DNA from: Rhodosorus marinus CCMP1338
Lineage: Eukaryota > Plantae > Rhodophyta
Direction: 5' to 3'
Length of the DNA: 64,000 nt
NCBI GenBank assembly: GCA_029953675.1
Contig: JAMWBK010000004.1
Span: forward strand, 682,001 to 746,000
In this document: piece after piece, positions 16,256-53,584 of the stretch
How positions within the stretch are numbered: the stretch's first letter is position 1
How the letters are laid out: each line of letters opens with the position of its first letter
Notes under the pieces: generated by a model
Database searches by the model: none
What the model was told of the DNA's origin: nothing
Seen by the model: only the letters and a program-made list of their open reading frames with translations
Translations under genes and position numbers: made by a program

Positions 16256-16379
16256 GCGCCCCGTCAGGCGGTTTAGGATTCAGATGGTCGGGGAGTGGGA
16301 GGCCAAGACAACTGAAGAGGGGTGAAGACTTTTAAGTTGTTCTAAGGGAGGAAAATTGGACAGAGGAATTCGAAAAGAT

Positions 16380-17300
16380 ATGAAGCTTGGGATTAGTCTA
16401 TTGGTGATCGTCGTTATCGCAGCGGCGGCTGTGGAAGCTAGCTTTCCACCACCGCCTCCGCCTCCGCCGAAGAAGTGCGAGGGCAGCGTTCCGGGATGGC
16501 TGGTTGAGGACAAGAAGTTCGACTGTGGTGATAGCTGTAAACAGTGCTGCGACCACAACTGCAACCTGGTTACTTGCAATAAGTGCGACCCCTTCTGCGG
16601 AAAGACCTGTATTGACCACGCGCCAAAGGAGGAGGTTGTGTACACGGATATCACTTGCAACGTAGATGAGCACTGGAACATGGAATGCATTCTGTGCAAT
16701 TGTCCAGACCCGTGGAAGGCTGGCCTTCCTAAGTGCGTCCACGAACTACTCAAGAAGAAGCTGTGGCTGCTCGCCGTGAGGTCACGGCAGTGCAGGCAAG
16801 CACGTAGGTTGAGAAGCCTTACACTTCTCTGCGGAGATCCCAACAAGGACTGGAAGTCTGGCTTCGAACAACCCCTGTTCCAATGCAAACAGGCTCTTAC
16901 GAACAAATGTATTATCAGTGACCGGAGCTTCCCGAATGTTAAGATCACAACTTTGAGCGGCTGCAAGCTTGAGGGCCATGGACCCAAGTGCGATGGACGC
17001 CTCCAGGTTTACAAGACCGACTGCGAAAACTGCGATGAGACTACTTCAGTCACGAGGGAGGGTATCGTCAAACAAGTTACGAAGAAATGCTTGGACAATG
17101 GCGCCTACTGCAAAAAGGTTGACGACAGCTGCAAGGTCGAGTTTGATCGTATTCCTTGCACTCCAATCTGCAGGCACATCAACTTCCTGGATACTTGTGA
17201 CAAGTGTAAGGTTGGCCGCCGTAGGTTTAAGCCGAGGACTCCTCCTCTTTGCATTGCTGGCGGTCCAGATGCATTCAAGTCATGCAAGTTCCATCACTAG
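16380..17300 (+). CDS. Secreted Cys-rich protein, paralog 1 (32 Cys; unknown family)
   Basis: Signal peptide MKLGISLLVIVVIAAAAVEA followed by poly-Pro. Family motifs QCC, DITCNVDxxWNxECIxCxCP, FQCK, DRSF and PPLC. Confidence 0.9.
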   Translation: MKLGISLLVIVVIAAAAVEASFPPPPPPPPKKCEGSVPGWLVEDKKFDCGDSCKQCCDHNCNLVTCNKCDPFCGKTCIDHAPKEEVVYTDITCNVDEHWNMECILCNCPDPWKAGLPKCVHELLKKKLWLLAVRSRQCRQARRLRSLTLLCGDPNKDWKSGFEQPLFQCKQALTNKCIISDRSFPNVKITTLSGCKLEGHGPKCDGRLQVYKTDCENCDETTSVTREGIVKQVTKKCLDNGAYCKKVDDSCKVEFDRIPCTPICRHINFLDTCDKCKVGRRRFKPRTPPLCIAGGPDAFKSCKFHH

Positions 17301-17589
17301 GAATCAGGGACGGAATAGCTCGCTTACTAGCTTTCAGACCTCTTGATCTCTCCCAAGGAGAGGAGCACCGCGTAGTAGCACTGAGGCTTAGGCTTGATTA
17401 AAAGTTGGAATTCTCCATCGAAAAATTTCACAGTCTCACACCGGTCCACGTGGTGGCTTCTCAACAGCGAGCTCTTCTCCTTGTGCAACAGAACCTGCGT
17501 TCTGACCAGCTAACCGAGGACCACTTACCCCTCCTTGCAACCGCTGGATCGACTGGGTCCTCCTGTGCACGGATTCTTCTGACTATGAG

Positions 17590-17772
17590 ATGTGGAGTTC
17601 GATTCCCGTCAGGGGTGTGCGGAGTTGAGCATCTGAATTCCAAACTTGGAAGCGCGGGGTTCGATTCCCGTCGGGTGTGTGCTGAAGTGATCAGATGAGT
17701 TCTTAACTTGGAGTCTCGGGGCTATCCAATCCTATCGAGTATCTGCAGAGTTAATCCTCCGAGTTCTGAACT
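17590..17772 (+). repeat. tRNA-like 62-bp tandem repeat, block 1
   Basis: GTTCGATTCCCGTC at 17597 and 17659 (period 62). GAGTT(C/T)T(G/T)AACTT anticodon-arm-like motifs recur. Confidence 0.7.
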
Positions 17773-17796
17773 TATTACACGATTAGTTTTTTAGTT

Positions 17797-18040
17797 CTCA
17801 CAGGTCCCAGCCTTTCATTTTGGAAAGCTTTGAACATCTGGAAAAATCCAGCTTGGGAGTGTTGCGGAAATGTTTTACTGACCCTCCTGTTGAATACCTG
17901 GGACTTCTACGCCGATTAAGTGTCGCTCTGTGGCGATTTTCTAGCAGTATGCTTGCCGAGGCACGCCCTCGCTGCCTTGGTTTGCGTAGTTCCTAGTTCG
18001 CCTTCACGCCCTGCGTAGCGCCTCAGGCTATGCTAGTAGA
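17797..18040 (+). mobile_element. Diverged family A CRE-like 3' fragment
   Basis: Translates HRSQPFILESFEHLEKSSLGVLRKCF..EYLGLLRRLSVALWRFSSSMLAEAR, matching 53636-54190, and ends CAGGCTATGCTAGTA. Confidence 0.85.
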
Positions 18041-18079
18041 TCCATCTAGTTTTGTAGCAGGGAAACTTTTTCAGTATAG

Positions 18080-18360
18080 TCAGGTGGTAATGAATGAATT
18101 GGGCTCAGGTGGGAATGAATGAATTTTCTTAATCGGAGACTGAAAGAATTTCCGAAAAAACCCCGAGGCGAAGATCGCGAGCCTCCAACATCAAAACAGT
18201 GTTCATAAGGCCACAAGCAAGAGAGTAACGGCTAAGCAACGAGGTCAGGGCGTCCGCGCAACAATTCCCAAAGCCAGCGAGAGCCAAAGGAATCCAGAAA
18301 CCCAAAGCACTCAACGACCAGAGGTACCAGCTCGATGAACTGGAGCTGAAACACGAATGC
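18080..18360 (-). mobile_element. Family B 3' fragment preceded by a duplicated tail
   Basis: GAATGAATGAATTTTCTTAATCGGAGACTGAAAGA...GGCGAAGATCGCGAGCCTCCAACATCAAA. TCAGGTGG is repeated at 18080 and 18105. Confidence 0.85.
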
Positions 18361-18444
18361 CATAGGGCCATGGGGCCATTTCTAATACTATTTCATTGCC
18401 CTATACGCTAGATATAATTTTAATTGAATGAATTGGTTCATGCC

Positions 18445-18530
18445 CTCTGGATTCCGTTGATTCTCGTTGGCTTCGAGAATTTGTTCCACGAACGCCCTGA
18501 CCGTCGGTCCTCGTTGTCTCTTGCTGTGAC
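18445..18530 (+). mobile_element. Short internal family B fragment
   Basis: TGGATTCCGTTG.TTCTCGTTGGCTTCG...GAACGCCCTGACCGTC. Confidence 0.75.
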
Positions 18531-18533
18531 GTA

Positions 18534-18659
18534 TGAAATGAATGAATTTGTTTAACCGGAAAGACTGAAAGAAAAAACGCCGAGGGGAAAAAAGATTATG
18601 GGCGGCGAAGATCGCGCGCCTCCATCATCAGCAGCGTTCATACACCGCATCAAGAAAGA
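18534..18659 (-). mobile_element. Family B 3' fragment (left arm of a head-to-head pair)
   Basis: GAATGAATTTGTTTAACCGG.AAGACTGAAAGAAAAAACGCCGAGGGG...GGCGGCGAAGATCGCGCGCCTCC. Confidence 0.85.
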
Positions 18660-18688
18660 ATGAACGCTGGTTTAATGGTAGACCTACC

Positions 18689-19137
18689 AAAATGATGAAC
18701 GACGAGTGACTGACCTCGTGGTCACCTGTGACGATAGCCGGCGTTCGACGTACGTTGATCTTGCCGTTCCTAATCCTCAGGCTAGTCGTTATCTGCAGGC
18801 TGCCGGAGAGCACCGTGGATTTGCCGCTGACAAGTATGAGACGTCGCAAAGAGTTGAAATACGCTGGGGCTTTGTATTCCCCAGGCGTTCGCGCTTCGGC
18901 TCTAGCTCACCGCTGGTAACTCTGGTCATTGAGTGCTACCGGTTCCTGGATTCCGTTGGTTTTCGTTGGTTTCGGGAATTGTTCTGCGAACGCCCTGACC
19001 GTGGGTTCTCGTTTACTCGTTCAAGTTTCTTGCTGTGGCGTGTATGAACGCTGCTTTGGTGTTGGAGGCGCGCGGTCTTCGCCGCCCATACTCTTCGGGG
19101 TTTTTTCTTTCAGTCTCCGATCAAACAAATTCATTCA
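18689..19137 (+). mobile_element. 5'-truncated family B copy including the RLE region
   Basis: NDERRVTDLVVTCDDSRRSTYVDLAVPNPQASRYL..., ending CCGATCAAACAAATTCATTCA. Confidence 0.9.
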
Positions 19138-19169
19138 GTTTTTACTGCTTTCCGGAGGTGGTGGGGTGG

Positions 19170-19350
19170 GGACGAGGGTTCGATTCCCGTTGGGTATTTT
19201 CTGAGCTGATCACCCGAGTTTTGAACTTGGAGACCCGGGGTTCGATCCATGTCAGATATATGCCAGATTGGTCCTGAGTTTTTTGAACTGGACGTAGTGT
19301 CGGCTGGATTGATCATCTGGTTTCTGAACTTAAGCGCGCGAGCTCGACTT
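19170..19350 (+). repeat. tRNA-like 62-bp tandem repeat, block 2
   Basis: GTTCGAT at 19178 and 19240 (period 62). Stem-loop CCGAG-TTTTGAA-CTTGG at 19214-19230. Confidence 0.7.
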
Positions 19351-19659
19351 CAGGAAGAGGAAACCTTGATTTTGCTAGCTAAACCTGGTTTCGTTTACTG
19401 CAGATCTGCCAGCGCGTTATGGCGGTTTAGCTCTAGCAAATGCCGTTGCGTATTGATAAGGCGGATATGTCGTTTTGACTTGAGAGGAAGACTGCTGTGG
19501 CGGGATCTAGGAGATGTTCTGGGGTAGTACAGTCCTTCGGTTGCCAATCAAGCCTGATCACCACCGTTTTGATTCGACGTCCTTGGCTAAACTTGGATGA
19601 AGGACAGTTTTAGCGGACATGTACCAGTAGATAGATTCATGATCATGGGCTTCAGCTTT

Positions 19660-20037
19660 AATTATCTCGGCCTAGTCGTTATTTGCCGGCTGGGGGATGG
19701 CGCAGTGAATTTGCCGCTGACAAGTATGAGACGTCGCAAAGAGGTGAAATATGCGGGGGTTTTGTCTTTCCCAGGCATTCGTGCTTCGGCTCTAGCTCGT
19801 CCCCTGGTACCTCTGGTCATTGAGTGCTTTGGGTTCATGGATTCTGTTGGTATTCGTTGGCTCTGGGAGTTACTTCGCGAACGCCCTGACACTCTCTCCT
19901 CGTTCTTGGCCCGTTTAAGTTTCCTGCTGTTGCGTATGAAAGCTGCTTTGATATTGAAGGCGCGCAATCTTCGCCGAGCGTTGTCTTTTTTTCCCTCGGG
20001 GTTTTTTCTTTCCGTCTTCGATTAAACAAATTCATTC
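19660..20037 (+). mobile_element. 5'-truncated family B copy
   Basis: MRRRKEVKYAGVLSFPGIRASALARPLVPLVIECFGFMDSVGIRWL..., ending CGATTAAACAAATTCATTC. Confidence 0.9.
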
Positions 20038-23000
20038 TTTCTGGAACTCTGGCAATCCCTGCATAGGTGTCTAGGCCTTGGGCGAACAGCAAACGGTGAG
20101 TGGAAGAGTCCTCATTTCACAAGTTGAATAGTTACAGCTCTGAAAAATATACTCACAGTTTTCAAGTAGCAGTAAAGCCGTGGCCTCAAGGACGAAGGTG
20201 AACATCTAAGCTAGACTTAGTGGTGCTCGTGCCGGAGGAGGAGAAGAGGAAGAGAGAGGGAGAAAACAGAGCTATAACAGGCGAGGTCAAATTCTTCCGG
20301 ATTTTTTTTTTTTCTTTCCCCTGCGAATTTTCTCCTATTAGATAGAAATCTAGAGCCCGCAATGTCATGTAAGCCCATTTCCACCAATTATGCTTGGGAG
20401 ATTCGACGCCACCATAGCGTTTTCTCTATTGGCTTCCAGCAGGATAGCTGTGGGTAGACTCCATACAGCGCAACGCGCGCTCCATCGACTCCCAAGCTGC
20501 CATATGACTGGAAGCGATACCACAGAGGAGATGGAAACTTGCAACGGCTCAGAATGTCGAAAATAAATGTCTGTCGATCGTGAGCGGGTAATGGAGCTCG
20601 GGCGTCGAAAACAAATCATAGTGCAACAATTTTCAAGCTAAACTCGAACAGTCGCAATATTGATGCACTCTTTCGCCGCTAATATCGGTTAACGGCATCT
20701 GGTCCTCCCGATTGTCCCGAAGAACAAAAGACAATGCCAAACCGGAGGGGTACGCCTCTCTTACTTAGCAAAACACTCCTTTATAGCCAACCGCCGTTCT
20801 GTCTCGTACAGGTCCGTGCCGAAAGATTCACTCGGAACACACAGCAGATGAGCTGAAGACATGGCACTTATCGAACGATACCAGCTCACTAGACTAGAAC
20901 CTTTTCTTCTTCGATATATATAGCGCCGTCTAGGGTGGAGGAGTTATGTAGGTGGAGTGTCGGAGGTGGAGAGATGGCGGCGGAGTGATGGAGATGGTAT
21001 ATTGGAACTTCTATAGTAGAGATCTGGGGAGTAGGTACACGCAAATATTAGTCCGAGCTATTCTCCAGTCAGCCGGAATCTTTCGAAGCTGGGCGTAATC
21101 AACACACTGCGGACCGGCCTGAAAAAGTAACACAAAAAAGGTGTCCCCTTCCGTGTTCCTGAGATCCACCTTGACGAAAGATGCTCAAGGGAGTTCTTCC
21201 AGAAACGCTTCCAGGGACCTCCCCAAAACTTCCAACCCAAGCAACCTTACCTTGCCACAACCATCTCCCCCAAGACGAGAGTTTCCAACATGCAACTACC
21301 CCGGGACAAAACAATAGATTCATATCTTCCAGAGCAAATATGCCTTCGTCGCTCTCCCATTGAGAAGCCCTGGAAACTGCTTTGCGGAATGATCGCTAGA
21401 GGACGCCGCTCGTGGATAGGATTCTGCCGCTTCCTCTACCCTCTTGCTCAACAAGAATTGTTATCAACCACTGAATTCAGATTGTCTCGAACTTTGGACC
21501 AATCATAACTCTCATAGACGAATATGAATAAAAAACTATATCGAAAGCTTATCTTGAAAAGGGAAATATGTAATATTTATCAACATTCGTTTTCTTAACA
21601 TGTAGACGAATCTACCGTCCATTGACACAGGAACTGGTAGGGAAGAGCGGGTTTCCTCCCCCTCATAGGGTCGAGGGAGTAGGATGTGAGCAAAAAAATC
21701 TTCGTGGTGTATAGGGATTCGAAGCCGGGTTGAATTTCAGATGGTTCCGTGTCACCAGGCTGTTCCAGTGTCTTTCCCAGATTTTTTTGCTCGCTTTTCT
21801 GCGGCGGCTTAAGAATCATCGTGGCAGAATGCCTACAAGGATTGTGTAGAACGAGTAAAACATAGAACGCGACGCGCGGAGATAGCTAATATTAGATTCA
21901 GATATCACGATATGAAGGGCTTTTTCAGGATGAAGGGTTAGCAAGGACCGCACTCTCCACTCCCCACTCCTTCCTCACTCGCAAAGTAGGGATGTGGAGC
22001 GACAGTTTACATTGGGCTGCCCTCCTCCCCAGGCAGGCGGGTCAGTATGACCACGGAGGGGAGGGTTTGGACGTGATTCTAATTCTGAATCTGAGGAATC
22101 AAAAATAAGTTTTCCTCACAGCAGACGTCAAGATCCTCGATGTCTCTGTAAAAGTGACTTGCTTATTCTGACCCTCGTACGAGCTGTCCCCTCTTACCCC
22201 GGAAGTGATTGGGGCGTGCCGCTGTATATCAGGTTACAGCTCTAAGTCGCGAAATTTGACTGTAAAAACCTCACCCGAACACCCAATACGCAAACCAGGG
22301 GATCTCTCCATCGGTTGGTTCTCCTCCATCTCACAAACCAGCGAGCAAGTTGGTTGGTTGTGGTGGAAACCCTCTTCACCCGGAAACTCTTTACGGTGCC
22401 CCGCAAAAGAAATATCTAGATCATCCATTCTATCGTTTGCGCGCTTTCTATCGATTTAGAGTCCGTATGCAGTCTCTCAACAAGATACACCTCCTGAATC
22501 ATGCCGGTTCTCTTTTACAGGTTTACTCCACTTCCTGATTCAATGATTCTCAAAACGAATATCCCAGCGACGCGCGCAAGGACTCCAACCCGCTTGCAGC
22601 AGGCCGAAATTTCTCGGCAGAAAAGGTTTTCGACTATCAGAAAACAACTCTCGCTCACCTCTCTCGGTCACCTCTTCCGAAGAGCTCTTCATGGGATAAT
22701 ACGTAGCGTTTTACAAACCTCCTCAAAACCTATAAAGGAGCAACGAGAAGCGGACCCTCCCCATTCTCGTCCATCCTCCCCCTCATCGTTCACCACGTCG
22801 CCACTCCCGTTCACTGTCCTGAAATCGGACTATCCTTGAATTTCTGAGTCAATCATTTCGCGTAAACGCCTGTATATTATTTGACCAGACGATATGCATC
22901 TATCCAATGCAAAATGAATATAAATAATCTACTATAGATTCAACCATTTTAATCACTCTTTCATAGAAACACCTTAAAAGATCTCAACAATAAAATTAGA

Positions 23001-25857
23001 TTTTCCTTGGTTATCCATATTATCCAATATAATTAGAGGAAACATATCTTTCTTAGAATTTCTCAAATACATTGCATAAGGTCGGAGATTTCAGGTACAA
23101 TAGCCAGGTTTCTCCATCGCCTCTCGAAAGATTCAATATTATACTTTAATTTGAGTACAGTGTCATGAATAAGAGAATTTAAAAATGATATATATCAGGG
23201 AGAGGGAACCAACAAAGATGACAACATAATGTTCTAAATTTCATGATTTTAGGGCCTGTCCGATAGATGTCGCCAACGGCCTCCTTAATAGAATTTTCGT
23301 CCACTCGCCCCAATGACAAAATAGAAAGGACAGCAAAAGATGAGAATATAATTTTCCCATTTCTCGATATCAACAAATGAAACAAAGAAAAACGAAAAAA
23401 ACAATTGATCATGGTAAATATATGGAAAAGGGGAGGGGGGTATGTGTGTAAGTGTAATCAAATGGAGACTTAGTTTTTTTACAACTAAACAATGACGCAG
23501 TTCAATTTTTATCAAGATCGAATACAAAACAACAAAAAACAGGATGAGTGAGCGAATGAATAGACGCGGAGTGTCTGGAAAAGTAAATATAATTCGTACT
23601 GTTGATGAAAAAATGTTTCTCCCCAGCAAATGTTCGCCAATTATATATATATTGAAATTAGATCGTTTTCAATATTCCCGTCGTTGTTTTTTATTCATTG
23701 AGAAAATTTGTCTGACTGCAAAACTCGTTTTTTCCTTTTCTCGATGAGCGAGGAGAGGGCTGTGAGAGAAACGCGAGGAGGGATTGGGGGGGGGGGGAAA
23801 GCGATGGAGAGGAATGGAGAGTTGTTTTTTTTTTTCCACTTTCCTTTTGCCGGTTGTAAGTGAGATCAGATACGTGCGGGAGGTTACGTAAGTGTGTGTC
23901 AGTAGGGGGGGTGTTATGAGGATTGTTTTGGAGGGGGAGGAAGGAGGAGCTTGAGTAAGTTTTTTTCTTGTTTTGTTCTTTGGAGGGGTGTGTGTGTGTG
24001 TGCGTTCGTGCTCAACGCTGTTCCTCCACCAACTTTTGATCGAAATACTGGCGAAGATGTTGCATACGGGTTTCTTCTAGATCGGCACCTGTGGGGCGAT
24101 GTTTTGCTTTTTCCGCAGGTTGGGGGGGAGGGGGAGGGTTTATCTAATGCTCATTTGGATGGGAGTGGTTAGCCCTCACCCGGGAGAACCTTTTTTTTTT
24201 CACGGTTTGGGGGTGAAAGGTGATGCTCTGTACTCTTGACCACGCTGAGTAGGTAGTTCTTCTAGATTCACTTCATAACAATGCGTTGCCACTTGGTCTG
24301 GAGTAGCGAGAATTATTGTATGGTGGTTTTGTATCGAGCATCATCATTTGGCAATTTGGTCTTCTGTGTCCGACGCGATGCTAGGTCACGTTCCCATAGA
24401 CTTGGGAATCAGTATTTTGCGGGCTTGCATAGCGAGAGCCTGGTCCTCTGTGGTTTTGCTTTTCGGAGCGCAAGGCACGCTTTGGCCAGTAGCAAAACAC
24501 GTTTTGGGAGGTTGTGTAGGTGGTGTGCCACTTCGTAGGGAAGATTACGATCGAACCTCTTCGATGAGGGTTCCCTGAGTATCCGTACCCCGACTTACAA
24601 AATTCAGCTTAATTTGGCTGCAACAACAGTCCTTAATGCCTCTCCTTTGTTACTTACTCTGCATTCCTCTACGGGGGATTTACGAGAATACGTTTTTGCC
24701 CCTATAACTTCGTGACTCCATAAGAACCAGCACCTTTGCTTTCTACACACACATCCAACGTCGAATTATTCCTTCGCATGATTCGAGAAGGTCCCAAGCC
24801 ACTCCCGCCAACAGCCAAGGTCTACGTTCTGCTTTGTGGGACTGTACCTTCGGATGCTCCACAGGCCGATACAGCAAAAGGGTCGGAAATCATCTGCATC
24901 CTTTTCATTTCTTCGGGCGGCAGGGTCCAAGAATGAGAAAGATTCTTGCCATATCAAATCGAAATTACAGCACTGTGTGTTTCTCGACAGCTATCTAAGT
25001 GCACGGAAAGGTGGACCGTGCATAGGCTGGTGGATTCTATGTTAAATTCATATCGACACAAAAACCATTACCGCAGTGTCCCAGGCGTGGGTCACTCCAA
25101 TTGCACGGACTCACTTTCTATCGTGCGTTTCAAATTGGCAGGTTTTTTCACCGCAAAGACTTGATATTCTCGTGGTAGAGATACGGCCACGCTCTCCACC
25201 TTTTCGTCTTGACTGACAACAAGTACTGCCAGAAACAGTTCCGAGCGATGAGGAGACAAGACTTGTTCCCGTCCCCCCTACCCCTTTCTTTTTCTCGCCA
25301 TGTTGCGTCTGGAAGGGGAAGTTTTTTTTTCTGAGCGCTTGGAGCACCTCTCTTGAAATGACCGAGAGGGCAATTTCGTCGGGGAGAACTCACCCCCCCT
25401 TCCACCTCGTCGAGCGTGGATGCATACACTTTCTCCCAGAACCGGCCTTCCCTGGAATGCCCCTAGGTTCCTGGTGTTGAAAAATTCTCCTTTTCACTTC
25501 TTTCTCACCCGCGCGCTCTGGATTTCTCTCTAAAGAGGCAATACACCCTCCCCCCCCTGTTGCTCGCTGAGGTGTGTCGATACCAAAAACTTGGGGGGCT
25601 TGCTTACCATGACGCCCCCGAGATATCGTCTCACAGTCTAGCCGGCTTCCACGAGCACACTTTGATACACAGCCATCCCTCCGAATTGTCAGGGAAAAAA
25701 GGGACAAAATAGGTCATCTCACTGGTTCGATAGGCTCCTTATTGGGCCAAGCTCCTTATTGGGCTATTTCGATGGCGAAGAAAGTTGGTGAGATACAACT
25801 TGAGCGACAATAACACAATAGATATGGAGCCCGTGGAAACCTTGATCAGAGTGAGAG

Positions 25858-25864
25858 TATAAAA
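25858..25864 (+). promoter_or_regulatory. Putative TATA box of Cys-rich gene 2
   Basis: TATAAAA 130 bp upstream of the ATG at 25988. Confidence 0.55.
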
Positions 25865-25987
25865 GGCTGCAAAGCTTGGATGCTGAGGTGGGGATCTCGA
25901 GGAGTATCCAAGACAAGTTCACAAGGAGATTGGGTGAAGTAGTACGAATCTGATCTCAGAGCTGAAGAGTCAATTGGAATTGCAACG

Positions 25988-26995
25988 ATGAGAGGACAGT
26001 ATATCAGTGTGTTGGTTCTTGCACTTATCGGGGTTGCGCTTGCAACGCTGTCGCCGCCAGTACCACCACCAACACCATCGAAGACGTGTAAGGAGATAGC
26101 TAGCAAGATCCCCGGAATTATGACAACCAGGGAGAAGAAATGTAACGCGAGGAAGGAGTGCTCGCAGTGCTGTGATGAGCATTGCAATATTGTTACGTGC
26201 AATAATTGCGACGATGACTGTCCCAAACAGTGCTTTGACCACCCGAAGGTGATCGATTTGTATGTTGATATCACCTGCAACATTGACGACTACTGGAACG
26301 TTGAGTGCATCGTCTGCGACTGCCCCGAAGAGGGTAAATTTGACTGGGAGGCGGTCGCAAAGATGCTCAAGGAGAAACTCCTCTGGCAGCTCACTGAATC
26401 AGACCAGTGCAAGATGGGCAAGATGTTCAACGATTTCAAGCTCACCTGTGGACTCTCTACCAAGAAATGGAGTTCTGACGGCTCGGTCGTACCTGCTGCT
26501 AACGACACTGGCGTGTCCGCGAGGACCCAGACGAGCTGGCCGAAATACTTCCCATTCCAGTGCAAGTTTGATAATTGGATGTGCATCTTCACTGACCGCA
26601 GTTTCAAGGACGTCCACATCAGGATTGAGAAGAAATGCCACCTGGTCGGAAAGCCCGCGTGCAGAATGTCGATCAAGAAGACCGTTCCCGACTGCTACAA
26701 CTGCGACGCTGACAGTCAGACCTCTTGGAAACTGTCGGGCAGGGTCTTCAGTACCCACAAGACGTGCAAGGAGAGCGGCCCGGCCAACAAGTGCGTCCAG
26801 CCGCCGCCAGAGATCACCATCGATTTCACCGGCGGATGCTCGGAGCTCTGTCTTCATGCCGACAAAGGAGACTCTTGCAACCTTTGTACTGATAAGTTCG
26901 GTAACAAGACAGACAGGATACCTCCGCTCTGCGTCAGTAAGAACCTGGACCGGGGTCTATACTATAACGATTGCAGTGGGAGTGAACCACGGTAA
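25988..26995 (+). CDS. Secreted Cys-rich protein, paralog 2 (30 Cys; unknown family)
   Basis: Signal peptide MRGQYISVLVLALIGVALA, Pro-rich linker, and the same 30-Cys framework and motifs as the other two paralogs. Confidence 0.92.
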   Translation: MRGQYISVLVLALIGVALATLSPPVPPPTPSKTCKEIASKIPGIMTTREKKCNARKECSQCCDEHCNIVTCNNCDDDCPKQCFDHPKVIDLYVDITCNIDDYWNVECIVCDCPEEGKFDWEAVAKMLKEKLLWQLTESDQCKMGKMFNDFKLTCGLSTKKWSSDGSVVPAANDTGVSARTQTSWPKYFPFQCKFDNWMCIFTDRSFKDVHIRIEKKCHLVGKPACRMSIKKTVPDCYNCDADSQTSWKLSGRVFSTHKTCKESGPANKCVQPPPEITIDFTGGCSELCLHADKGDSCNLCTDKFGNKTDRIPPLCVSKNLDRGLYYNDCSGSEPR

Positions 26996-28802
26996 AACGT
27001 GTTCCGGGTACGGTGTGTGGCTGCTGAGCAAGTTTAGGCGATTCTATTTCCTAGAGTTGTTTATCCTAGCCCTCCCACTATACACCTCAATAAAGCATCT
27101 AGATTGAGGTCTCCTAGTCCCATCATCGGAGCAAAGCCTGTCGAAATAGTGCTCTCGCACTTCAATTCAGCAAAATATCTACTACTCCAGTCAATTCGAC
27201 TGGATTTCTGCACAATCGAGCACCGATGTAGGAGGCATAGAGCTGAGACGGGATGTAGCAATCACGGGCCATGCTAAACCACTTTTTCAGGTTTTATCCA
27301 GAAAAGTGTCGGTCACATCAAGCCGCGAGAGTGAGCCCGGGGAGCTTGGTCATCTGGGGACAGATTTTGGAGATCACGCCTTTAACGGGTGGTTTAGTCT
27401 GGTTGCTGCATCTTCCAACTACCGAAAATACTGTTGGGTGAGGACTCTTGTCAACTCGACTGAGATCAATATCTAACCTTCTCGTGCATCTCGGATGATG
27501 AGGTTTTGTTTTAGCCCTTATTAGCAACACCGTATGTGGGGTATGACACTTAAGTTCCTGGACCTTCTCTCCCCGTGCCTGAGCTCTTCTTTGTGCCGTA
27601 ACCTGTAGTTTAATACCATTGGTTAAGGCACTGCCGCGAGCATGTCCATACGTATCAGTTATTTACATCGTTGTTAGGAACCTCGACTTGAAATTCACAT
27701 ATTTGCGTTTTCCTTAATTGTATAAAACGATAACAATCGACGATATTAAGCAACTTCATCCTATCTATTAATATACCCTGAAACCCTGACGCAGCTTAAA
27801 GCGAACATGAAAAGACAAACTAAAGAGCGCTAGCAGAAGCGGCGCTAGTGCGCCTATGGTATCATTCTGCTAGAGGCAAATATTATGTTATTGACATAGA
27901 GGTTCCGATCTGCACTGGGGGCGGAAGCCACCTTTCACACGCATACGCGGCTAGATCTTCGGGCGATGCGAGTCTACTAGCTAAAGCTTAGACTCTGCCC
28001 ACTATCCAGATGCTCTAGGTGATTAGGGCAGCTTCCTCCTCGTCCACTTTATGGTAGAGGCATTAGAAAATGTACTATACACTCTGCAGGGCGGTCGCTA
28101 AAAAAAAAAAAAAAACTTTTGCGAGGACATGCCAAGCATGACTTGTCAAGGTGGTTAGACCTTTCCACAATGAAAACTGAAACCTCTTTTGAACTCTGCC
28201 CGCACGCACGGGGTGTGGAGGGAGGTTCGCAGTGCTCTTGGAAAACGCAGTAAAACCATCTCTAACCAGAAGGTTCCCCTAGACCGTTAAATTTCATCAA
28301 TACCAGGGTTAAATCCCAGACCATGGTGAAAATGAAGCCAAACCGTACCTCCGCGGTAGTCCCCTACCCCATTCCAAACCTGGGGGCTAGTAGACACCAC
28401 CTCAGTAGTCCCAACCATCGAAAAGTGTACCAAAACACAATAAACCGGGCCAAAAGAATCGAAACACATGGACAATGACTTGAGCGAGGGTTCTATATTA
28501 AGAACACAACACCCAGAATAACCTTTGTAGCCCAGGTTTGATCTAGACAAATCATTTTTATGAAAAAATAGACTTTATCTAGAAACTTCTGGCGAAATTG
28601 AGTGCTCATGTTGCGGAGGCGGGGCCTCTCTCAATTCGAGGCCGGACTGGGAGCAGGTAGGGCCGACCGGGGAGTTCGTGTGCGAGAGGCCGATGAGAGC
28701 GTTCAAATAAGCAGGCAAGAGGTACGTGCGGAGGTCAGGAGTCAACCTCGGTTGAGAAAGACACTCAGATAATATTGAATGTTGTTCTGCCAATCCAACC
28801 CA

Positions 28803-28834
28803 AATGGTCCGATCAAACCAATTCATTCAATAGT
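28803..28834 (+). mobile_element. Family B 20-nt micro-insertion with imperfect 6-bp TSD
   Basis: AATGGT-[CCGATCAAACCAATTCATTC]-AATAGT. Confidence 0.6.
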
Positions 28835-29572
28835 CGGGAAAGACCCTGAGAGCCGTTGACGCTAAAAGACAGGGTAAATGGAGCTGGTTGTACAACCAAT
28901 GCCAGAACGATGTTCAGGAGGAGAGAGACAGCTCCTCAGCGTTCTTCTTGGTGACAAAGTAAACTTGACAACCACCCGAATTCCGAGCGCGGGGAAGCAG
29001 AACTGAAAGGTTCCACCATCTGCGGGTCGAATAGCCCCGGAACGGATCGATTGGAAACGGTATGTGGCAGCCGAAAACTGCTAGCCGTGGACACTGCTTT
29101 TGGATATGGTCGCTCGCGTTACCAATTCTAAAGCTCCGTCAAGATAAGTTGGAAAACTGAATGTAGGTCGAAAATCTCAGGGAAAAAGTCCATTGGAAAA
29201 TCCTCCTCACGCCCGTGAGACACCTTGTGACCAGTACCCTTGTTTTGAACACATATTTCCTTTCCACAGCACAAAGACGTGGTCCAGCCGCAGCGACATT
29301 CCCCCACATCAAGGAAAACCGGCATCGGAGGATGGCAGAAGACCTCCAAACTCAACCCAAAAGGTCATCTCCTCACGGACGCTAGCTCTAAGATTGGTCC
29401 TTCAAGTAGACCCAGCACCCCGTGAGAATATCTCGCCACCTCCGTCGCCAATTCATAGTGTTCCTCATCCGCGTTGTATCATATCTTAGCGCTGAACCTC
29501 TCCCTGGACTCTTCCCCAAGTCCCGGTTTGCTCAAGCTCAGTCCTAACCTCTACCCTGGCCCGCAACACGCC

Positions 29573-29615
29573 TACCAGGGACTGAAATGAATGAATGAAT
29601 TTGTTACCAGGGACT
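29573..29615 (-). mobile_element. Family B 21-nt tail-only insertion with perfect 11-bp TSD
   Basis: TACCAGGGACT-[GAAATGAATGAATGAATTTGT]-TACCAGGGACT. Confidence 0.9.
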
Positions 29616-32600
29616 AGGGCAGTCAGCAAACCCCTATCTTCGAACAAGCGTCAACGTAGAAGCTACTTTGGGCCCAGTGTCCCGATTCTTGTTATGATTT
29701 TGTGCAAAATAATTGTTCCGTCTTGAGGAGAGATATCGGCGAACTCGGCTGATCAGTTTCAGAACGGGTTTTCTCTCTGTGTCTGTACGGAGAGGGTGGC
29801 TTAGCATACCTTGAAACGGGATGGAACAGGCGTATCCCTGAGATAAAAAGGAGGGACAATTGTGCAAATCTAGCGCATGAGAAAATGTCGATAGGGTTTT
29901 AGTAACAAGCTACTAAACCAAAGCCACTATCAAACGCAACCCAATGAACGGGATGGAAAGAGCCGTGCAAGACTCTACGTATCCCAACGACAGGGCTGGC
30001 GCTACTCGCGGCCGGGGATGGGGGGGGAAGGTGCTTTGTAAATGCTTCACACATGGGTCACGGTGAGGGGTAGGCGCTCGGGGGAGTTTATTTTCGGGAG
30101 CCAGCTGAGACGCTCCCCTCAGCAATCTGTTGCGAAATGAATCTGTTCTTGTGGACTGTCCGTACCTGAGAGTTGCGCGCACATAAAACTTCGCTAACTC
30201 CTATTCAGCATATCAAATTCAAACCCTTGAAGTCACTAGCTCTTATTTCTTGTATCTATTTCCCTAGTGCTTATTGCCCGTTTCACTAATACACATTCTG
30301 CTTTGGTGAGGAGGTGTGGTCTCCCCAAAAAGAACCTTTGCGCTTGTTGAGTTTGACCCTTTTTACTGTTAGACTGCTACTCATGCTAACCAATCCTGTC
30401 GACCATGTCTGAAGCGAGTTCTGGGGCGATTTGATAAGCTCCATGACGTTACCGTCAGGTCAGAACATATCCCCGGAGGAAAACCCGTCTTCAATGCATC
30501 AGCGTACGTCTGTGCGCTCATCACATAATGTTTGCCTTTGATACATTGTCTGGAGGTGGACAGCCTGTCTTTTGAGGATAGTGACTAGGTGAAACTTGTA
30601 CCGGCACCCAAACATCTCCACCGATAACGTTGTGCTTGTTCAGTTGTTGAGGCCTGCATGCCGTCTTGAAACTGATCTGATCTGTCGGTCAGCGAGCATT
30701 TTAAACCATTTTACTGGGTACCGTTTGGTTGAGGCGCGCCAGTTTTTCATACTCAACACCATCACCCCTACCCAAGAAAGATAGGCAACACCAAACCCCT
30801 AAACTCTCCTCCCTTTCCCTCCTCTAAAGTTCCCACCAACTCTGCCCGTTTCCCCGCAACCAAAACAAAACAAAAACCTGAACTCCGATCAAATTCACCA
30901 ACTCTAACTCTCTCTAAGAGGCAAACTAAACTACTAGAATTCAATAGACTAGGCAAAGTCCATATCGCGTCGAAAATACGTATCGAATTTCGCCTAACTT
31001 TCACTTTTTGTGTTTCGGAAGAAAATAGATTGGGAAAATACAATATTTTTTTATATCTTCTTAGGATGAGATATTTTCTGTTCAGCCCATTGAAATAAAA
31101 AAAAACAGACGAGAAAAGTAATCAAAAAGAATAGATTTTTTTCGCCCTAAATTTTTTTTATCGGAACGTCTCTGTTCGACGGGTTTTTGTAATTTTTGCT
31201 AAGAAAGTGTTCTCAAACTCGACGGGTTTTTGTAATTTTTGCTAAGGGGGTGTTCTCAATTATATCTGGGTGGTTGGACAAGAGGAAGAGAGAAAATATT
31301 GAAGCAAATCGTTTTTTGTTTGATCAGGAAAAGGTGAAGGGGAGATGGGGGTGTGTGAAGAAAGGGGTATTGATGAGGTCAAAAGTATGCCGATGGGGAC
31401 GGTTTTTGGATTGATTTACGTTCATGAGTTCGTTGTAGAGTACAAGGAAGAAAGTAGGAGATGGGGCGTTATAGATATAGGATTGTACCAAGTGGGTCAG
31501 CTTTTTCGCCGTTTACGACCCAGAAAGTGGATAAACCCGCGAAAACAGAGGGGTTTACCGTCCTCTGCGACAAACCCGACCCACTTGGCAAAAACCAGAT
31601 TATAGACACTGTAAGGTGACTGTATTGACTAATTTCCTTGTCTTTTTGTTCGTTAGAAAGGTTGACAAAATGGGACGTCAAATGGCTTTTGTCAGCGAAA
31701 AGGGAGAGGAGAATGGAGGGGAGGAGGGGAAAAGAGAACGATTGCAGCGTGCACATGTTGAGTGAAGTTTTTTAGTTTTTAAACACGAAATGAAAAACTG
31801 ATATCGACGAGCCAGGTGTGTCAGAATGGGGGGAGAGGAAAGCTAGGTAAAAAAAAAAAGGGGGAGGTTTGGGTTCAGGACAGTAGCGTGGAGAAACTGG
31901 AAGCAACTGTGGAGAAGGAGAAAGAAGAGGGTATGAGGGTGGAAGGGGTCTTTTTTTTTTTTTTAGGGTTTTGGGGGCTTTCTCTGTTGATTTGTCGGGA
32001 ACCGTTGATGGAAATAAAAGGAACAAGAAAATTTGATTTCGTGGAGCGAAAAAACAAACAAGCAAAAGTAGTCTAGGAAGTGAAACACGTTCAATGAAAC
32101 ACACACTCCCAGCGATGCCTTCGTAGTGATGCTCTTCACAGGACGTTTCGGGAGAAGTGAGGGGCAAGAAACAACGAAAAAGGGTCTTTGCTGTTCCTCG
32201 TTTGGTTATTTCGAATTACCTTCCTACGTAGCGGCTTATGCCTAATCAGAGGAGTTGGTGTGCTGTGGAAAAGGGAAGGAGGGAGGGGGGGGGAGGAGAA
32301 AGTGGGCCATCCACTTTTTTTGCTTTGGATTGACAGTGTTTAGAATTCATCGAGGAGGTTGACTCCTGGCCAAAAAAAAGGAAAAAAGACTTCTCGGTTG
32401 TGTGTTGATTTTCCAGCGAATTTCTTCCCGAGATAATGCCGAGCCTCCTCGCAGTACAGAGACAGTGGTCTACCAGGTTGCACATTTGCCCTTCTTCGCC
32501 GGGGGGAAGGGGGGTGGGGGAGAGGTGGGAGAGGGGTTTCTCCACACAAGTGAGACGCCGCTCCTATGGCACTTTCGCCCTTGAGATTCAGCTGCTTAGA

Positions 32601-34810
32601 CTTGAAAAATTCATCTTGAACACGTTTCAGCATCTGAGTAGTTGCTGTAATCTGCGTTCAAAGCTTTTTACTCCTCACCTTCCAAAGGTCTGGATGCTAT
32701 CCTGCTAAACTGGCTGACGTTCACCTTGTTAAAGACAACGGCAAACTTTACAGTTTAAGCTTAACCGTGAGAAAATACCGCAGCACTTCCTTGTTTGCTC
32801 CCAACCGAAACTGGGCAAAGGGCATTGAGAAACAACAAGGTTAGCTCATCTTTGGATGACGATACATCAATTAGAGACGGACAAAATCAATTTAACCAGA
32901 GGCTAAGGTCCTCTATCCTCATACCTCTACCGGCTTAAGTGAATTTCGTAAAGAATTTACCCAGGCGCCAGCTAGTCCATTCGTACGGGTTCGGTCCACT
33001 ACCGTACTTTTAGCTTTGAGGAGGGAGGGAGATGGTTTTACTCAGGTGCTAGGTGGGCAAAAGTTGGTTAGGAGCACCGTGAACAATCCTTGGAAAAGTT
33101 CTGAAAATTGTGTGTCGACGCTCTATCTGAGGACTAAGCACAATGGAGCCCGCCGGGTTCAGACGCATCCCTGATGAGAGTAAGAATTAATTAGGGGCGT
33201 TAAATTCGAGCTATTTTTGTTCCTCCTCAGTGCTCGAAAAACACGCTCATGGCTACTTTGTGGGTATTCTCTCCATGTCAATCGATGCAGTTGGCTACCC
33301 CCCCTAAGTCTTTCAACTTTTCCTGGCAGGCGGTCCGCAATTGTGGTTTTTTTTCTTTTCGTTTCTCAGAGTCAATCTCACTTTTGGTGGGATTTCACTC
33401 CTTCTAAGACCAGGTGGCAAAGCGAGTCAGGACAGGAGTACAGGAAATATTTACTTATCATCGACATCGGAATTTACCCACTGCTGATACAATCGGTCTC
33501 CAGCAAGCCCGGCTGCTCCTTTGCAATCGCCGTCCAGGCGACAGACAAGAAAGGTGAACGGCTTTGGGACAAGGAAGCAGTTTGAAATCCCTCAGAAAAT
33601 CTCTGCATTCCACATCCTTCCTCAGTGCTCTAAACAGCCGGGCCGTTGATGTGTAAGAGCTTCCCCTGAGATTTCACTTCTCTAATCTGCACATGGCCAT
33701 AGTGGGGATCCGTTGTTCCTGGCACCCCCCGTTGGAAACGAGCGTTTTGACGGACAGACTTCATCCTCAAATGGCGAACCTGATTCGGTCCCTTAGTAAT
33801 ACTTCAAGCAAAACGGTTTTGCGCGAAGCTTTTGTAACAGGAAGAAAACCCTTGAGAAAGCTTAGGGCGAACTGCTTTGCAAGTCGTTGTCGAGCAACAA
33901 CCTGATACAATAGTTGACGAAGATGCTCGCTCGCTTCTCCAAAGATATGGCTATCCAAACCCGCGAGTTGCAGGCAATTGCAAACCACAGTGGAATTTTT
34001 TTTGTTTTGGCTCCTTGTTGGTGCACTGTTCGAGATCCTCCATTGCCAAAAAAGCTCCGCACCGGAGTTGCAAAGTAGCCGTCGATGACATTCAGAACGC
34101 GAGATTTTTTTCAGCGATCGGGTATTGAGACTGAAACGGGGATGGAGGATTAATCCCCAGTCTTTTAGATATGGACGGGTCCTTGTCTATGGCGATATGA
34201 TTGAGGATTCAATATTGTTACTCAAAAGTGCAAGAAAATTGGCGCTCCTCTGGCGGAACTACACCAGACCAAGACAAATTTTTGGCCAACACCTACTTTG
34301 CAATGGGGCGAAGAAGATCTTAGCTTAGTGGGCCCGGTGACCGTATAGAACAAAAAAATTCATCCTCCCCTGAAGACAATGAGGCTGTTGGGTTATCTTG
34401 TTTAGCTTTCCGCATGTTTTTTGTTTCATTCTCACCACAAAAAGAAAAAAAAAGGGAGGGGACAAGCTCGCCTCTGGAGGGAACCAGGGAGCGAGGGGGG
34501 TTGTCCACTTCTTTGTTAGCGCTTGTATTGAAAGCGACTGATTCTCACTCCAAACTATTGACCTGTAAGAAAAGTCCTGGTCTGGGAACGTAGCCGGTTC
34601 TCTCAAGGTTTCGCTCTAGATATGGATCGATCTAGCGGCACTTTTTGATCTGGCAAGAAAGCAGGGCAAAAGGACAAGAATCGACTGTGGTTCTGGGTTT
34701 TGGAGCTCGACTACGGCCTAGGGCGTCTTTCAGAACCCGAATGGAAAATATTGAGATACGCCTCTAAGCTGTAGAGATACAAGCAGTGTAGAAAACTGGA
34801 TTTGGATAGC

Positions 34811-34817
34811 TATATAA
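34811..34817 (+). promoter_or_regulatory. Putative TATA box of Cys-rich gene 3
   Basis: TATATAA 124 bp upstream of the ATG at 34935. Confidence 0.55.
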
Positions 34818-34934
34818 GGGTAGAAAAGCTGGCTGGTAAGGAGGGGAGTTGGAAGAGTCAGTCAAGCAGGAGGATAAGGCGAAGGGTGGGAAAAAGAGTA
34901 TTATCTTCAGAAGAACTCAGACTGTGATTGCACA

Positions 34935-35876
34935 ATGAGAGCTGCGTACATCAGTGTACTGGTGCTTGCACTGGTCGGGGCGGCCATTGCCAGCGAGCCC
35001 CCAACGTGCAAGGACCAAGTGGTCCCTGGTATCATGACCATTAAGGAAAAGAACTGCAGTGCCAATAAGAACTGCAGCCAGTGCTGTAACGAGTACTGCG
35101 AGATTGAGACCTGCAACAACTGCGATGAGGACTGCCCTGAACGAAAGTGCCAAAAACCAAAGGTTTGGGAGTTCTACGTTGACGTCACGTGCAACATTGA
35201 CGACTACTGGAATGTGGAGTGCATCGTTTGCGACTGCCCTGCCGACAAATGGGAGTGGGATTATGTCGCTGAGGTACTTCAGGAGAAACTCAAGTGGGAG
35301 CTTCTTGAATCGAACCACTGCAAGATGGCGAAGATGATCAACAGTTTCAAGCTTTCTTGCGGAATCTCTACCAAGAAATGGGATTCTAATGGTGATGCGG
35401 CCGCTGTCGATACTGCAACTTCACCGGTCACCTGGCCATGGGGTTTCCCCTTCCAGTGCAAGAACGAGAATTGGAAGTGCATTTTCACCGACCGCAGTTT
35501 CCCTGGTGTTCACATCAAGATCCAGAAGAAGTGCAAGCTTTTCCCAGGCGCCAAGTGCATCTCGAAGTTCAAGAAGACCGATACTGCATGCGAATACTGC
35601 GACAAAGAAAACGACGCCTCCTGGATTCGCTTTGGCAAGGTTATCTCTATCCACAAGTACTGCGAGAACAAGGACGGATATTGCAAGAAACTCAAGCCCG
35701 ACATCTGGGTTCGCATTCCGAAATGTACCGAGATCTGTCTGCATGCCGACTTTGGAGAAAGCTGCGATTACTGCACTGACATCTGGGGCGCGAAGACGAA
35801 GAGGACGCCACCTCTCTGTGTTCCTAAGGATCTCAACCCTGCTCTGTACAAGAACAATTGTGGTGGAGGTCATTAA
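34935..35876 (+). CDS. Secreted Cys-rich protein, paralog 3 (30 Cys; unknown family)
   Basis: Signal peptide MRAAYISVLVLALVGAAIA. Motifs DVTCNIDDYWNVECIVCDCP, FPFQCK, IFTDRSF and TPPLC. Confidence 0.92.
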   Translation: MRAAYISVLVLALVGAAIASEPPTCKDQVVPGIMTIKEKNCSANKNCSQCCNEYCEIETCNNCDEDCPERKCQKPKVWEFYVDVTCNIDDYWNVECIVCDCPADKWEWDYVAEVLQEKLKWELLESNHCKMAKMINSFKLSCGISTKKWDSNGDAAAVDTATSPVTWPWGFPFQCKNENWKCIFTDRSFPGVHIKIQKKCKLFPGAKCISKFKKTDTACEYCDKENDASWIRFGKVISIHKYCENKDGYCKKLKPDIWVRIPKCTEICLHADFGESCDYCTDIWGAKTKRTPPLCVPKDLNPALYKNNCGGGH

Positions 35877-36779
35877 TAAAACCGCCGCCACGCTTATCAG
35901 ATCTCTCCTTATAGGATCTATCGTAGTGCTTCCTAGTACGTGCTTCAATAAAGATCGGAAAGAGACAATTGATGGCTTTCGTATAAACATGTTTCCAGTG
36001 AAGAAAACAGTCACGGTCGACGCTTCTGATTCTGAATCCAACCCCGGCTCAGACCAGTACAACTAAAGGCAACCGTAAAAACAGTGAAGCGGGTTTGTAA
36101 CTCGCGCATGGTTATGCACTTTTTACAGTGGTGGTTGTAATAAGACCTGCTCACGGCTCACTTGTTTGCCATGGCCGTGTCGCTTTATCTTCTAAAAAGA
36201 TGCGCTTTTGTCGGGTTATGTGCCCTGGCTACCCTCTGTGTACGATCGCGTTTAGCTGTCCTGAGCGGAGCATGGATTTCCTTGTGGTCGTATCCTTACC
36301 CTCTCCCCCATGTTCTAACTTCCTTAGCCAGCGCAGGAAGTGCATTTCTCTCCACAGTCCGCGTACATGCGGATATCGGTACATTTTAGACTGCCTCTAA
36401 CTCGAAATACGACCTGCATAGCACATTAAGGCTCACGAGTTTTCAGGCCGATGTGTTTGCATGGACAGCTGTCCTTAAGCACCCTGTGCTTAGTATCAAA
36501 GATTTAACTGCCTACGCAATATATGAATGATAAAACATGTACAAAAGGTAAAATAGATTTGTTTATTGTATAAAAATACTCAAAGTACGATATTAAGCGG
36601 TCAGAAATACGGTGCGAATGGAACAATAAAACCCAGCAATTCTGGCTAATCACAAATCTGCTTCTAGTGAAGAAATTTATCAGTTATATTTTAGTCTCCC
36701 GATGAATTGAAAGTGTTCGAGCTTCTCGATAGAATCAGAATGGTTTTTATATATTTTGGGCAGGTGAAATGTACAAGTA

Positions 36780-41430: not shown

Positions 41431-41737
41431 ACTGGACTTTACTGGACTTTACTAGCATAGCCTGAAGCGCTACGCAAGGCGTGAAGATGAACTAATAACT
41501 AGGGAGGCAAGCATGCAACCCCAGGCGCCGATGGCGCGCCTCGGAAAGCATGTCGCTGGAATATCGCCAAAGGGAGACACTTAAACGCCTCAAGAGCGCC
41601 AAATATTCAGTAGGATGCTCAGCAAAACATTTCCGCAACCACTCTAAACCCGACTTATCCACGTGACCAAAGCTTTCCACAATGAATGGCTGGAACCGGT
41701 GAGAGCGACCCTCAGGACTTTACTAGCATAGCCTGAA
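41431..41737 (-). mobile_element. Young 5'-truncated family A copy with a second 23-nt 3' terminus fused at its 5' end
   Basis: Tail ACTGGACTTT x2. The body differs from 53585-53850 at one position found by eye. GGACTTTACTAGCATAGCCTGAA is repeated at 41715-41737. Confidence 0.92.
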
Positions 41738-44769: not shown

Positions 44770-45658
44770 TGACCGCAGAAGTCGCCAGCTAGCAAAATAC
44801 CGAGAAGAATCTGTCCTTTTTCATCTATGTAACGAATTTACTCAGTAGATACGAACTGTTAATAAAAAACTCTCCAATTGACTAAGAATCAGAGGTATTT
44901 CCCGCCGTCTTCGGCGAACTAATTGCCCCAGGCGTTCTTCAAGTGACGGAACAAGCGGTAGGGACTGGGCTCCCGATTCGGAGCTGGCGAAAGTCTATCG
45001 CTAGGATACTTCAATGTGACCTTCATACAGCTGATCCTTGACGATCCTAGCCGATAAAGTGCATCGCAGCATAACACCGGTTCGAAAACTTTGCGCTCGC
45101 AAACACCACATGCAGTATTCACGAAAGGACCACGTGGATGGGTGGAAGGCCTGAGGTAAAGCATCCCGTACAGTAGCTTGACTGAAGCTGACAACAGACC
45201 TGGGCCGCGCTCTATAGCAGGCTAAAGATAGCCATGCGCTCGACGGCGACGACTCCCGATCGGATGCGGACACGTGTCTCGCTGGCATGATGTTATACAC
45301 TCCTCATCCAGCTGCGGCTTAGTGAGCTTTTTCTAGCCCAGAACGGGTTCCACAGGTTAGCCATCCGTCCGTAGTGATTAGCGGCTGCCTCTTTTTGCTC
45401 GAATCAGTCCGTTTAGCTGCTTTGCTATAACAACGGATCTACGTGGATGAGTGTCCGATGTGGACATGAAGGGTTGCTCCCCTGACTTTCGTGGCAACCA
45501 TAGACACTGAAAGGCAACACCCATTACATTCAGATATCTTCAGTTCCCCATGAAGTTTGTTATTTTTTTATTCAACACGTTTGGACCCTCTGAAGCTCAC
45601 AACAGGCACACTAAAGCCAGTCATCTAAATGTACAGAACTACCCTTTTGCGGCCAAAT

Positions 45659-46024
45659 TTATGCCGTGGACGGGTTAAGTGCATCGTCCCAACGGACGGT
45701 GAAGCATCTCCCGAGGTAGGGGTAGCAAACGGTCTCGGCTTGATTGTCATCTTCCCTGATTCCAGCAGACGGCTGAAAATTGGCGAGGAGATCCGGCACA
45801 TCTTCCTGCATGCCTTCGTCTATCCACTTTTTAAGCCCAACTTCACCACCCGGGAACCCACCGCAAAGGTAGTTCTTCCACACGCTGTTGTTGTCGTTGA
45901 TGATTTCTACTCCCTTTTCCGACTAGCTTTGATGCGTTTTCGCCATCTGCACTCGTGCTGGACACGCACGGCGTGCCTGAGTCGCCTTTCCACACAAAGA
46001 TCCAGCAGAAACTAATCCAATCAT
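45659..46024 (-). pseudogene. Pseudogene copy of the small putative plastid protein
   Basis: Same length as 54999-55364, but TGG has become TAG (plus-strand CTA at 45923-45925), giving ...HQS*SEKG. Confidence 0.8.
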
Positions 46025-47752: not shown

Positions 47753-47755
47753 GAA

Positions 47756-51569: not shown

Positions 51570-51605
51570 CTAGCAAACGACGGTTGGGAAATTCGATCAC
51601 TGAGG

Positions 51606-53446: not shown

Positions 53447-53584
53447 TTTATATACGAATGAAGTGGTTATAAACTAAATCCTTGTAATTGGTAGCCATTG
53501 TTCTCGGCCTAGTGACCGCGAAAGTCTGCCAAATAGCAAAAGAACGAGAAAAATCTGTCTCCTTTTCATAGATGTATCGAATTC

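Follow-up and report, generated by a model that had tools for sequence, protein, structure and literature searches.

What kind of protein is encoded by three long, cysteine-rich open reading frames (ORFs) that stand alone in a gene-poor part of the nuclear genome of the red alga Rhodosorus marinus CCMP1338? The ORFs, here called paralogs 1, 2 and 3, lie on the plus strand of a window of 64,000 nucleotides (assembly GCA_029953675.1, the 3.19-Mb contig JAMWBK010000004.1, positions 682,001 to 746,000); all positions below are counted from the first nucleotide of this window unless another sequence is named. A preliminary description of the DNA had read them as intact, single-exon members of an undescribed secreted family, in which 30 cysteines are kept in register and the loops between them vary, and had suggested a recognition, adhesion or antimicrobial role. 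Our analysis indicates that they probably represent a lineage-restricted, secreted and disulfide-rich extracellular family, represented in this genome by five intact genes and one with a frameshift, for which a stable structural or binding role is likeliest.

The three ORFs are genuine genes. All were recovered intact by ORF calling (Table 1), and paralogs 1 and 2 have close counterparts among the MMETSP transcripts of an R. marinus strain diverged from CCMP1338. The proteins P0005 (85% amino acid identity to paralog 1) and P0002 (84% to paralog 2) share 90%-identity clusters with them. The transcript contigs L003 and L002 run collinearly with paralogs 1 and 2, respectively, from untranslated region to untranslated region with no intron-sized gap. 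Thus, these two genes consist of a single exon, and the related strain transcribes their orthologs. For paralog 3, the single-exon structure appears likely from its intact, full-length ORF. Paralog 1 starts at ATG 16380 and not at the upstream TTG 16356; its ortholog P0005 begins at the same methionine. Long ORFs overlapping the three genes (16280-16987 minus, 26262-27107 plus, 35389-36066 plus and 35421-36062 minus) were dismissed as by-products of the coding frames, and no gene is called for any of them. The MMETSP transcripts labelled Rhodosorus marinus differ from the CCMP1338 genome at about 15-17% of DNA positions (synonymous divergence, dS, 0.41-0.44), indicating that two deeply diverged strains share one species name.

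With 8,392 genes and 24,821 introns in 31.2 Mb (PMC10250338), the CCMP1338 genome has on average about three introns in each gene and a gene every 3.7 kb. Intron-less paralogs that are alone among called genes over 21 kb are therefore unusual. The GC content at third codon positions is 0.63-0.68 in the three paralogs and 0.53-0.63 in neighbouring nuclear genes; being level with or slightly above its surroundings, it gives no hint of a recent foreign origin. A viral or foreign source was rejected on this native-like codon usage and because scans of IMG/VR viral contigs and JGI metagenome contigs returned no relative of the family.

The family is small, old and so far known only from Rhodosorus. 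Its members are the six CCMP1338 copies (five intact, one frameshifted), three MMETSP transcripts and two environmental contigs. An exhaustive hmmsearch with a five-sequence profile against 1.84 billion representatives yielded six proteins at E ≤ 0.001, all of them family members, and six matches were also obtained when 5.8 billion clusters were searched with a nine-sequence profile. Every named member is from R. marinus; the remaining two lie on short contigs, one in Logan assembly SRR31837515 and one in JGI sample 3300019039. A literature search for a described cysteine-rich Rhodosorus protein found nothing relevant. Beyond the window, CCMP1338 carries one copy on contig 13, and two more copies, in inverted orientation to each other, on the contig of the window, some 88-95 kb upstream of it. 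Together with the three window genes, this pair places five of the six genomic copies inside about 131 kb. The intact member of the pair encodes P0010 (301 residues; L006 2988-3890, minus strand). The other (L006 10253-11132, about 88 kb upstream of the window) is 94% identical to it and has a 9-bp deletion and a 2-bp deletion, the latter removing an invariant cysteine codon and shifting the frame. Judged from these lesions, it appears to be a recently inactivated family copy, although an assembly error may lie behind the frameshift. The annotated 158-residue protein P0009, which carries the UniRef name '4Fe-4S ferredoxin-type domain-containing protein', is a truncated gene model of this frameshifted copy.

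The earlier assessment that the family is undescribed and has no recognisable domain was borne out at the level of both sequence and predicted structure. Pfam searches with nine members at E up to 10 gave no consistent match, NCBIfam gave none, and an hmmsearch of all PDB sequences with the family profile had no match at E up to 10. An AlphaFold2 model of paralog 1, built from eight sequences, reached a mean predicted local distance difference test score (pLDDT) of 75.1 and a predicted TM-score of 0.63, with means over ten-residue blocks mostly above 80 across residues ~50-300 and dips at ~150-170 and 200-240. The predicted chain begins with a cysteine-dense N-terminal segment with short hairpins, followed by a long hairpin (83-106), a helix (118-133), two more pairs of long strands (177-215 and 226-254) and a cysteine-dense C-terminal segment. 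Foldseek found no match for this model (best E 0.24 in the PDB and 0.08 in BFVD, TM ≤ 0.18), and no confident similarity to a characterised family was found by either route. An earlier AlphaFold2 model, built for paralog 3 from five sequences, had a pLDDT of 52.6 and was set aside as too poor; its Foldseek matches were discarded as meaningless. Internal repeats were also absent, as hhalign comparisons of segment against segment gave a probability of at most 0.5% for every pair. A modular architecture of the variant-specific surface protein (VSP), furin-like, EGF or TNFR type was rejected on this result and for lack of any Pfam repeat match. An extensin-like, hydroxyproline-rich glycoprotein was likewise rejected, since the family has a single short proline tract (0-10 residues) of variable length.

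The three window proteins are unmistakably related, with pairwise identities of 37-57% and tblastn E-values between copies from 1e-34 to 1e-106, far beyond chance. In the three-way alignment, 27 cysteine columns are strictly common and a further three differ in placement by one or two positions, so that the proposed register of 30 is nearly exact for the window; across the family, the framework is 26 and not 30. The two extra cysteines ascribed to paralog 1 are indeed present. As for the conserved islands, FQCK, DRSF and PPLC occur in all three proteins. The long island holds when written as D[IV]TCNxDxxWNxECIxCxCP, as paralog 3 carries DVTCN, and KLxWxL is confined to paralogs 2 and 3, paralog 1 having KLWLLA at this place. 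The proline tract after the signal peptide is Pro8 in paralog 1, PPVPPPTP in paralog 2 and nearly gone in paralog 3. The loop upstream of FQCK is the main hotspot of insertion and deletion in the family alignments; in paralog 1 it has about 19-20 residues fewer, and the pLDDT of its equivalent in the paralog 3 model is low.

The N-termini argue for secretion, as had been proposed. All full-length members have an N-terminal basic residue, a hydrophobic core (Kyte-Doolittle score KD10 2.9-3.5) and a cleavage motif of small residues (AxA type), these calls being sequence heuristics. No full-length member has a later hydrophobic segment (maximum later KD19 ≤ 0.86), a transmembrane segment, a glycosylphosphatidylinositol-like signal or a K/HDEL tail. 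The proteins are thus probably secreted and soluble.

The cysteines, in turn, behave as disulfide partners would. Twenty-six columns are invariant across 10 members. Outside this core, C119 at the start of the helix and C251 in a late strand (paralog 1 numbering) occur together in six members and are jointly missing from the other four, the pattern expected of two residues bonded to each other. Because the pair occurs in six of the ten, its loss in paralogs 2 and 3 is likelier than its gain in paralog 1. P0008 is short of exactly four cysteines, in the N-terminal segment, and the mature cysteine count, with signal-peptide cysteines excluded, is even in nine of the ten members. Paired gain and loss together with even counts suggest that the cysteines form intramolecular disulfides, in agreement with the preliminary description.

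The divergence of the paralogs is old: paralogs 2 and 3 are separated by a dS of 1.2, and against paralog 1 dS has reached saturation. A self-BLAST of the window showed DNA similarity between paralogs 2 and 3 at the coding level only (69% over ~600 bp). It detected no similarity involving paralog 1 or the flanking DNA, and a recent segmental triplication was therefore rejected. In a neighbour-joining tree, every window paralog that has an MMETSP counterpart groups with that counterpart. Taken with the high or saturated dS between paralogs, this pairing places the duplications before the split of the two strains (dS 0.41-0.44).

The family is under purifying selection. By the Nei-Gojobori method, the ratio of nonsynonymous to synonymous divergence (dN/dS) against the MMETSP ortholog is 0.20 for paralog 1 and 0.18 for paralog 2. 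These are pairwise estimates from two pairs of genome copy and ortholog at the dS given above. Sliding windows of 40 codons, loops included, do not exceed 0.47, and the length-variable loop upstream of FQCK is the most relaxed part, with a dN/dS of 0.43, still below 1. With ortholog ratios near 0.2 and paralog dS of 1.2 or saturated, the differences between paralogs reflect age rather than diversifying selection, which counts against a recognition function. Lysine, described as abundant in the inter-cysteine loops, makes up about 10-12% of the residues of the proteins, but is offset by aspartate and glutamate. Over the family, mature proteins carry net charges between -2 and +13 (+12, 0 and +1 for paralogs 1, 2 and 3).

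We propose the following course for these proteins. Each would enter the secretory pathway through its N-terminal signal peptide and would be released as a soluble protein of ~280-315 residues. It would then fold into a single non-repetitive, mostly beta structure of long hairpins and one helix, flanked by the cysteine-dense N- and C-terminal segments; for this fold the AlphaFold model is our guide. Thirteen family-invariant disulfides and two to four lineage-variable ones, with C119-C251 of paralog 1 among the latter, would lock the structure, and the old paralogs would have specialised in charge and loop length. That they serve as stable constituents of the cell covering or mucilage, with a structural or binding function, is a tentative suggestion, which we hold at less than even chances. 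It is somewhat more doubtful, but possible, that the family is a new fold of ~280 residues, in which long beta-hairpins surround one helix and 13 invariant disulfides lock the structure. Such a fold would have originated in the Rhodosorus/Stylonematophyceae lineage and would serve an extracellular function undescribed in red algae; a novel type of matrix, adhesion or defence protein would be an example.

Several observations weigh against the proposal of a secreted, disulfide-rich structural or binding family. The case for secretion and for disulfides is drawn from sequence features and not made at the protein level, and P0011 has an odd number of mature cysteines, 33. No observation links the family to the cell covering in particular, and the spread of net charge from -2 to +13 fits poorly with one uniform polyanion-binding role. 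The statement that the fold is not a known one covers the PDB and BFVD. A k-mer-seeded search with paralog 3 returned itself and one MMETSP cluster and no transcript counterpart, and no family transcript was found from CCMP1338 itself.

Other functions have to be weighed against the same evidence. Disulfide-stabilised, lysine-rich proteins that damage or bind microbes near the alga would account for a cysteine-rich, secreted-looking, multi-copy and lineage-restricted family in a gene-sparse, repeat-bearing region next to a CAP/PR-1-like gene, for the net charge of +10 to +13 in paralog 1 and several relatives, and for the abundance of long beta-hairpins in the predicted architecture. However, the net charge is about zero or below in paralogs 2 and 3 and in three relatives. 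Two of the three window proteins being essentially without net positive charge, the antimicrobial suggestion of the preliminary description is weakened as a uniform, cationic one. A dN/dS of about 0.2 carries no signature of an arms race, Foldseek shows no likeness to pore formers or defensin-like folds, and ~290 residues is far above the usual size of antimicrobial peptides. Such a defence role is therefore improbable, if not to be dismissed. A secreted enzyme or enzyme inhibitor is a still weaker candidate. Its site would be formed by the invariant non-cysteine elements D-x-TCN, DRSF-x-V-x-I, one histidine and R-x-P-P-L-C; polar residues invariant in all members, including D181, R182, S183 and H266 (paralog 1 numbering), and strong purifying selection speak for it, but neither sequence nor fold resembles any catalytic or inhibitor family.

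The idea behind the earlier reading, in which a rigid scaffold presents hypervariable loops that evolve under diversifying selection and serve recognition or adhesion, fares worse and is very unlikely. The cysteine framework is kept while the sequence between cysteines differs by 45-65% between paralogs, and one loop varies in length. Between orthologs, however, the loops are conserved under the low dN/dS described above, the divergence of the paralogs is explained by their age, and merely ~5-6 copies per genome do not make a large repertoire of variants. The step from variable loops to recognition is thus not supported, and a fast-evolving recognition molecule is unlikely. Binding of a metal or an iron-sulfur cluster, as the UniRef name on P0009 would have it, is hardly credible. 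The string C-x2-C-x2-C-x3-C is found in P0006, P0007, P0009, P0010 and P0011 (five of 11 sequences), but it is missing from the three window paralogs, P0002, P0005 and P0008, no member has a Fer4-type Pfam match at E up to 10, and the signal peptide and the paired gain and loss of cysteines point to extracellular disulfides. The name is most likely an artefact of the cysteine pattern.

Which known proteins does the family resemble? The closest likeness is to lineage-specific secreted cysteine-rich proteins, such as the effector-like proteins of fungi and oomycetes and the cysteine-rich peptides of plants, and it is one of kind, not of homology. Both have a signal peptide, a high and even cysteine content, no recognisable domain and a narrow taxonomic range, and both form small tandem or clustered families with few or no introns in gene-sparse, repeat-bearing DNA. 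The Rhodosorus proteins are larger, however, with ~290 mature residues and 13-17 disulfides in one non-repetitive unit; they are under purifying instead of diversifying selection, and their host is a free-living unicellular red alga, neither pathogen nor symbiont. The family is thus an undescribed one inside a broad and familiar class. With Giardia VSPs and furin-like or TNFR-type repeats it shares an extracellular setting, a cysteine content of ~10% and several CxxC motifs, but it has no Pfam match, no internal repeat and no membrane anchor. CAP/PR-1 proteins are likewise secreted and disulfide-stabilised, and one is encoded in the same neighbourhood; the family is unlike them in sequence and fold, and the CAP domain matches the neighbouring ORF only. 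The 4Fe-4S ferredoxin-type proteins have the cysteine string in common with some members, but here the string is not conserved, no Fer4 profile matches and signal peptides are present.

Table 1. Features of the family genes and of their surroundings in the window.
Feature	Position	Strand	Description	Basis
Paralog 1 coding sequence	16380..17300	+	306 aa, 32 Cys, net charge ~+12	ORF, Cys count
Paralog 2 coding sequence	25988..26995	+	335 aa, 30 Cys, net charge 0	ORF, Cys count
Paralog 3 coding sequence	34935..35876	+	313 aa, 30 Cys, net charge +1	intact ORF; no transcript ortholog found
Paralog 1 minimum transcribed span	16271..17425	+	inferred span	L003 positions 13-1156 aligned, 83% DNA identity
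Paralog 2 minimum transcribed span	25911..27114	+	inferred span	L002 positions 1-1177 aligned, 85% DNA identity
Paralog 1 putative signal peptide	16380..16439	+	MKLGISLLVIVVIAAAAVEA, next residue S; KD10 = 3.47	cleavage by eye, -3/-1 rule
Paralog 1 Pro8 tract	16446..16469	+	immediately C-terminal to the signal peptide	
Paralog 2 length-variable low-complexity loop	26471..26554	+	~aa 162-189, between the 'CG..KKW' and 'FQCK' islands	
Spacer 1	17301..25987	.	8.7 kb, GC 0.47; dispersed-repeat copies (~250-420 bp) at 18.1-20.0 kb	
Spacer 2	26996..34934	.	7.9 kb, GC 0.47; without similarity to spacer 1	
CAP/PR-1-domain ORF	952-2424	-	Gly9 run upstream of the CAP domain	E 4.5e-17
RTX repeat ORF	48800-49765	-	321 aa	HemolysinCabind
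RTX repeat ORF	57938-58930	-	330 aa	HemolysinCabind
Truncated third RTX copy	61760-62170			
Segmental duplication, ~5 kb	44841-50091 vs 54153-59229		contains the RTX ORFs	76-88% identity
Aa_trans amino-acid transporter	62598-63998	-	continues past the window end	E 1.3e-42
Dispersed repeat	18113-20041, 38113-38532, 47439-47752, 51144-51571, 53157-53450, 59985-60222; also 6369-6513	both orientations	~250-420 bp	72-88% identity
Repeat pair, 281 bp	41435-41715 vs 53579-53859			98.9% identity
Further copy of the 281-bp repeat	17796-18038			75% identity

The surroundings of the three genes are poor in genes and carry repeats (Table 1). Spacers 1 and 2, which separate the paralogs, have no called gene, no Rfam family and no Pfam match above threshold (spacer 2 has one below it); no transposon or RNA genes were found in them. 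A dispersed repeat without a Pfam-recognisable ORF is present in at least eight copies. The two copies of a 281-bp repeat are far more alike than the other repeats of the window, which suggests recent movement or gene conversion.

Among the neighbouring ORFs, the one with a CAP/PR-1 domain has a signal-peptide-like start at an internal methionine (MMKSRVCAAGFMIVLLALV...). Two ORFs with RTX repeats, 88% identical to each other, lie in the segmental duplication. RTX nonapeptide repeats are typically bacterial, and their genes in a red-algal nuclear genome may go back to an old horizontal transfer. The amino-acid transporter is a long uninterrupted ORF and, of the genes recognised in the window, the only one clearly of housekeeping type. 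The CAP and RTX ORFs begin with signal-peptide-like sequences. With gene-poor, repeat-bearing spacers and these CAP and RTX genes, the region looks gene-sparse and enriched in intron-free genes for secreted proteins, and such secreted-looking neighbours would count in favour of reading the cysteine-rich family as secreted.

The gene inventories of unicellular red algae are small and reduced, and the extracellular proteins of these algae are almost uncharacterised. The family is one among very many orphan secreted cysteine-rich families of eukaryotes and gives no sign of a new mechanism, and its value is moderate until its structure or location is known. It is nevertheless compact, expressed, conserved and confined to one genus, with no detectable relatives, and is thus an uncomplicated candidate both for a disulfide-rich fold not seen before and for the birth of genes within a single lineage. 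With intron-free genes for proteins of ~300 residues, it offers a tractable way into the cell-surface biology of Rhodosorus.

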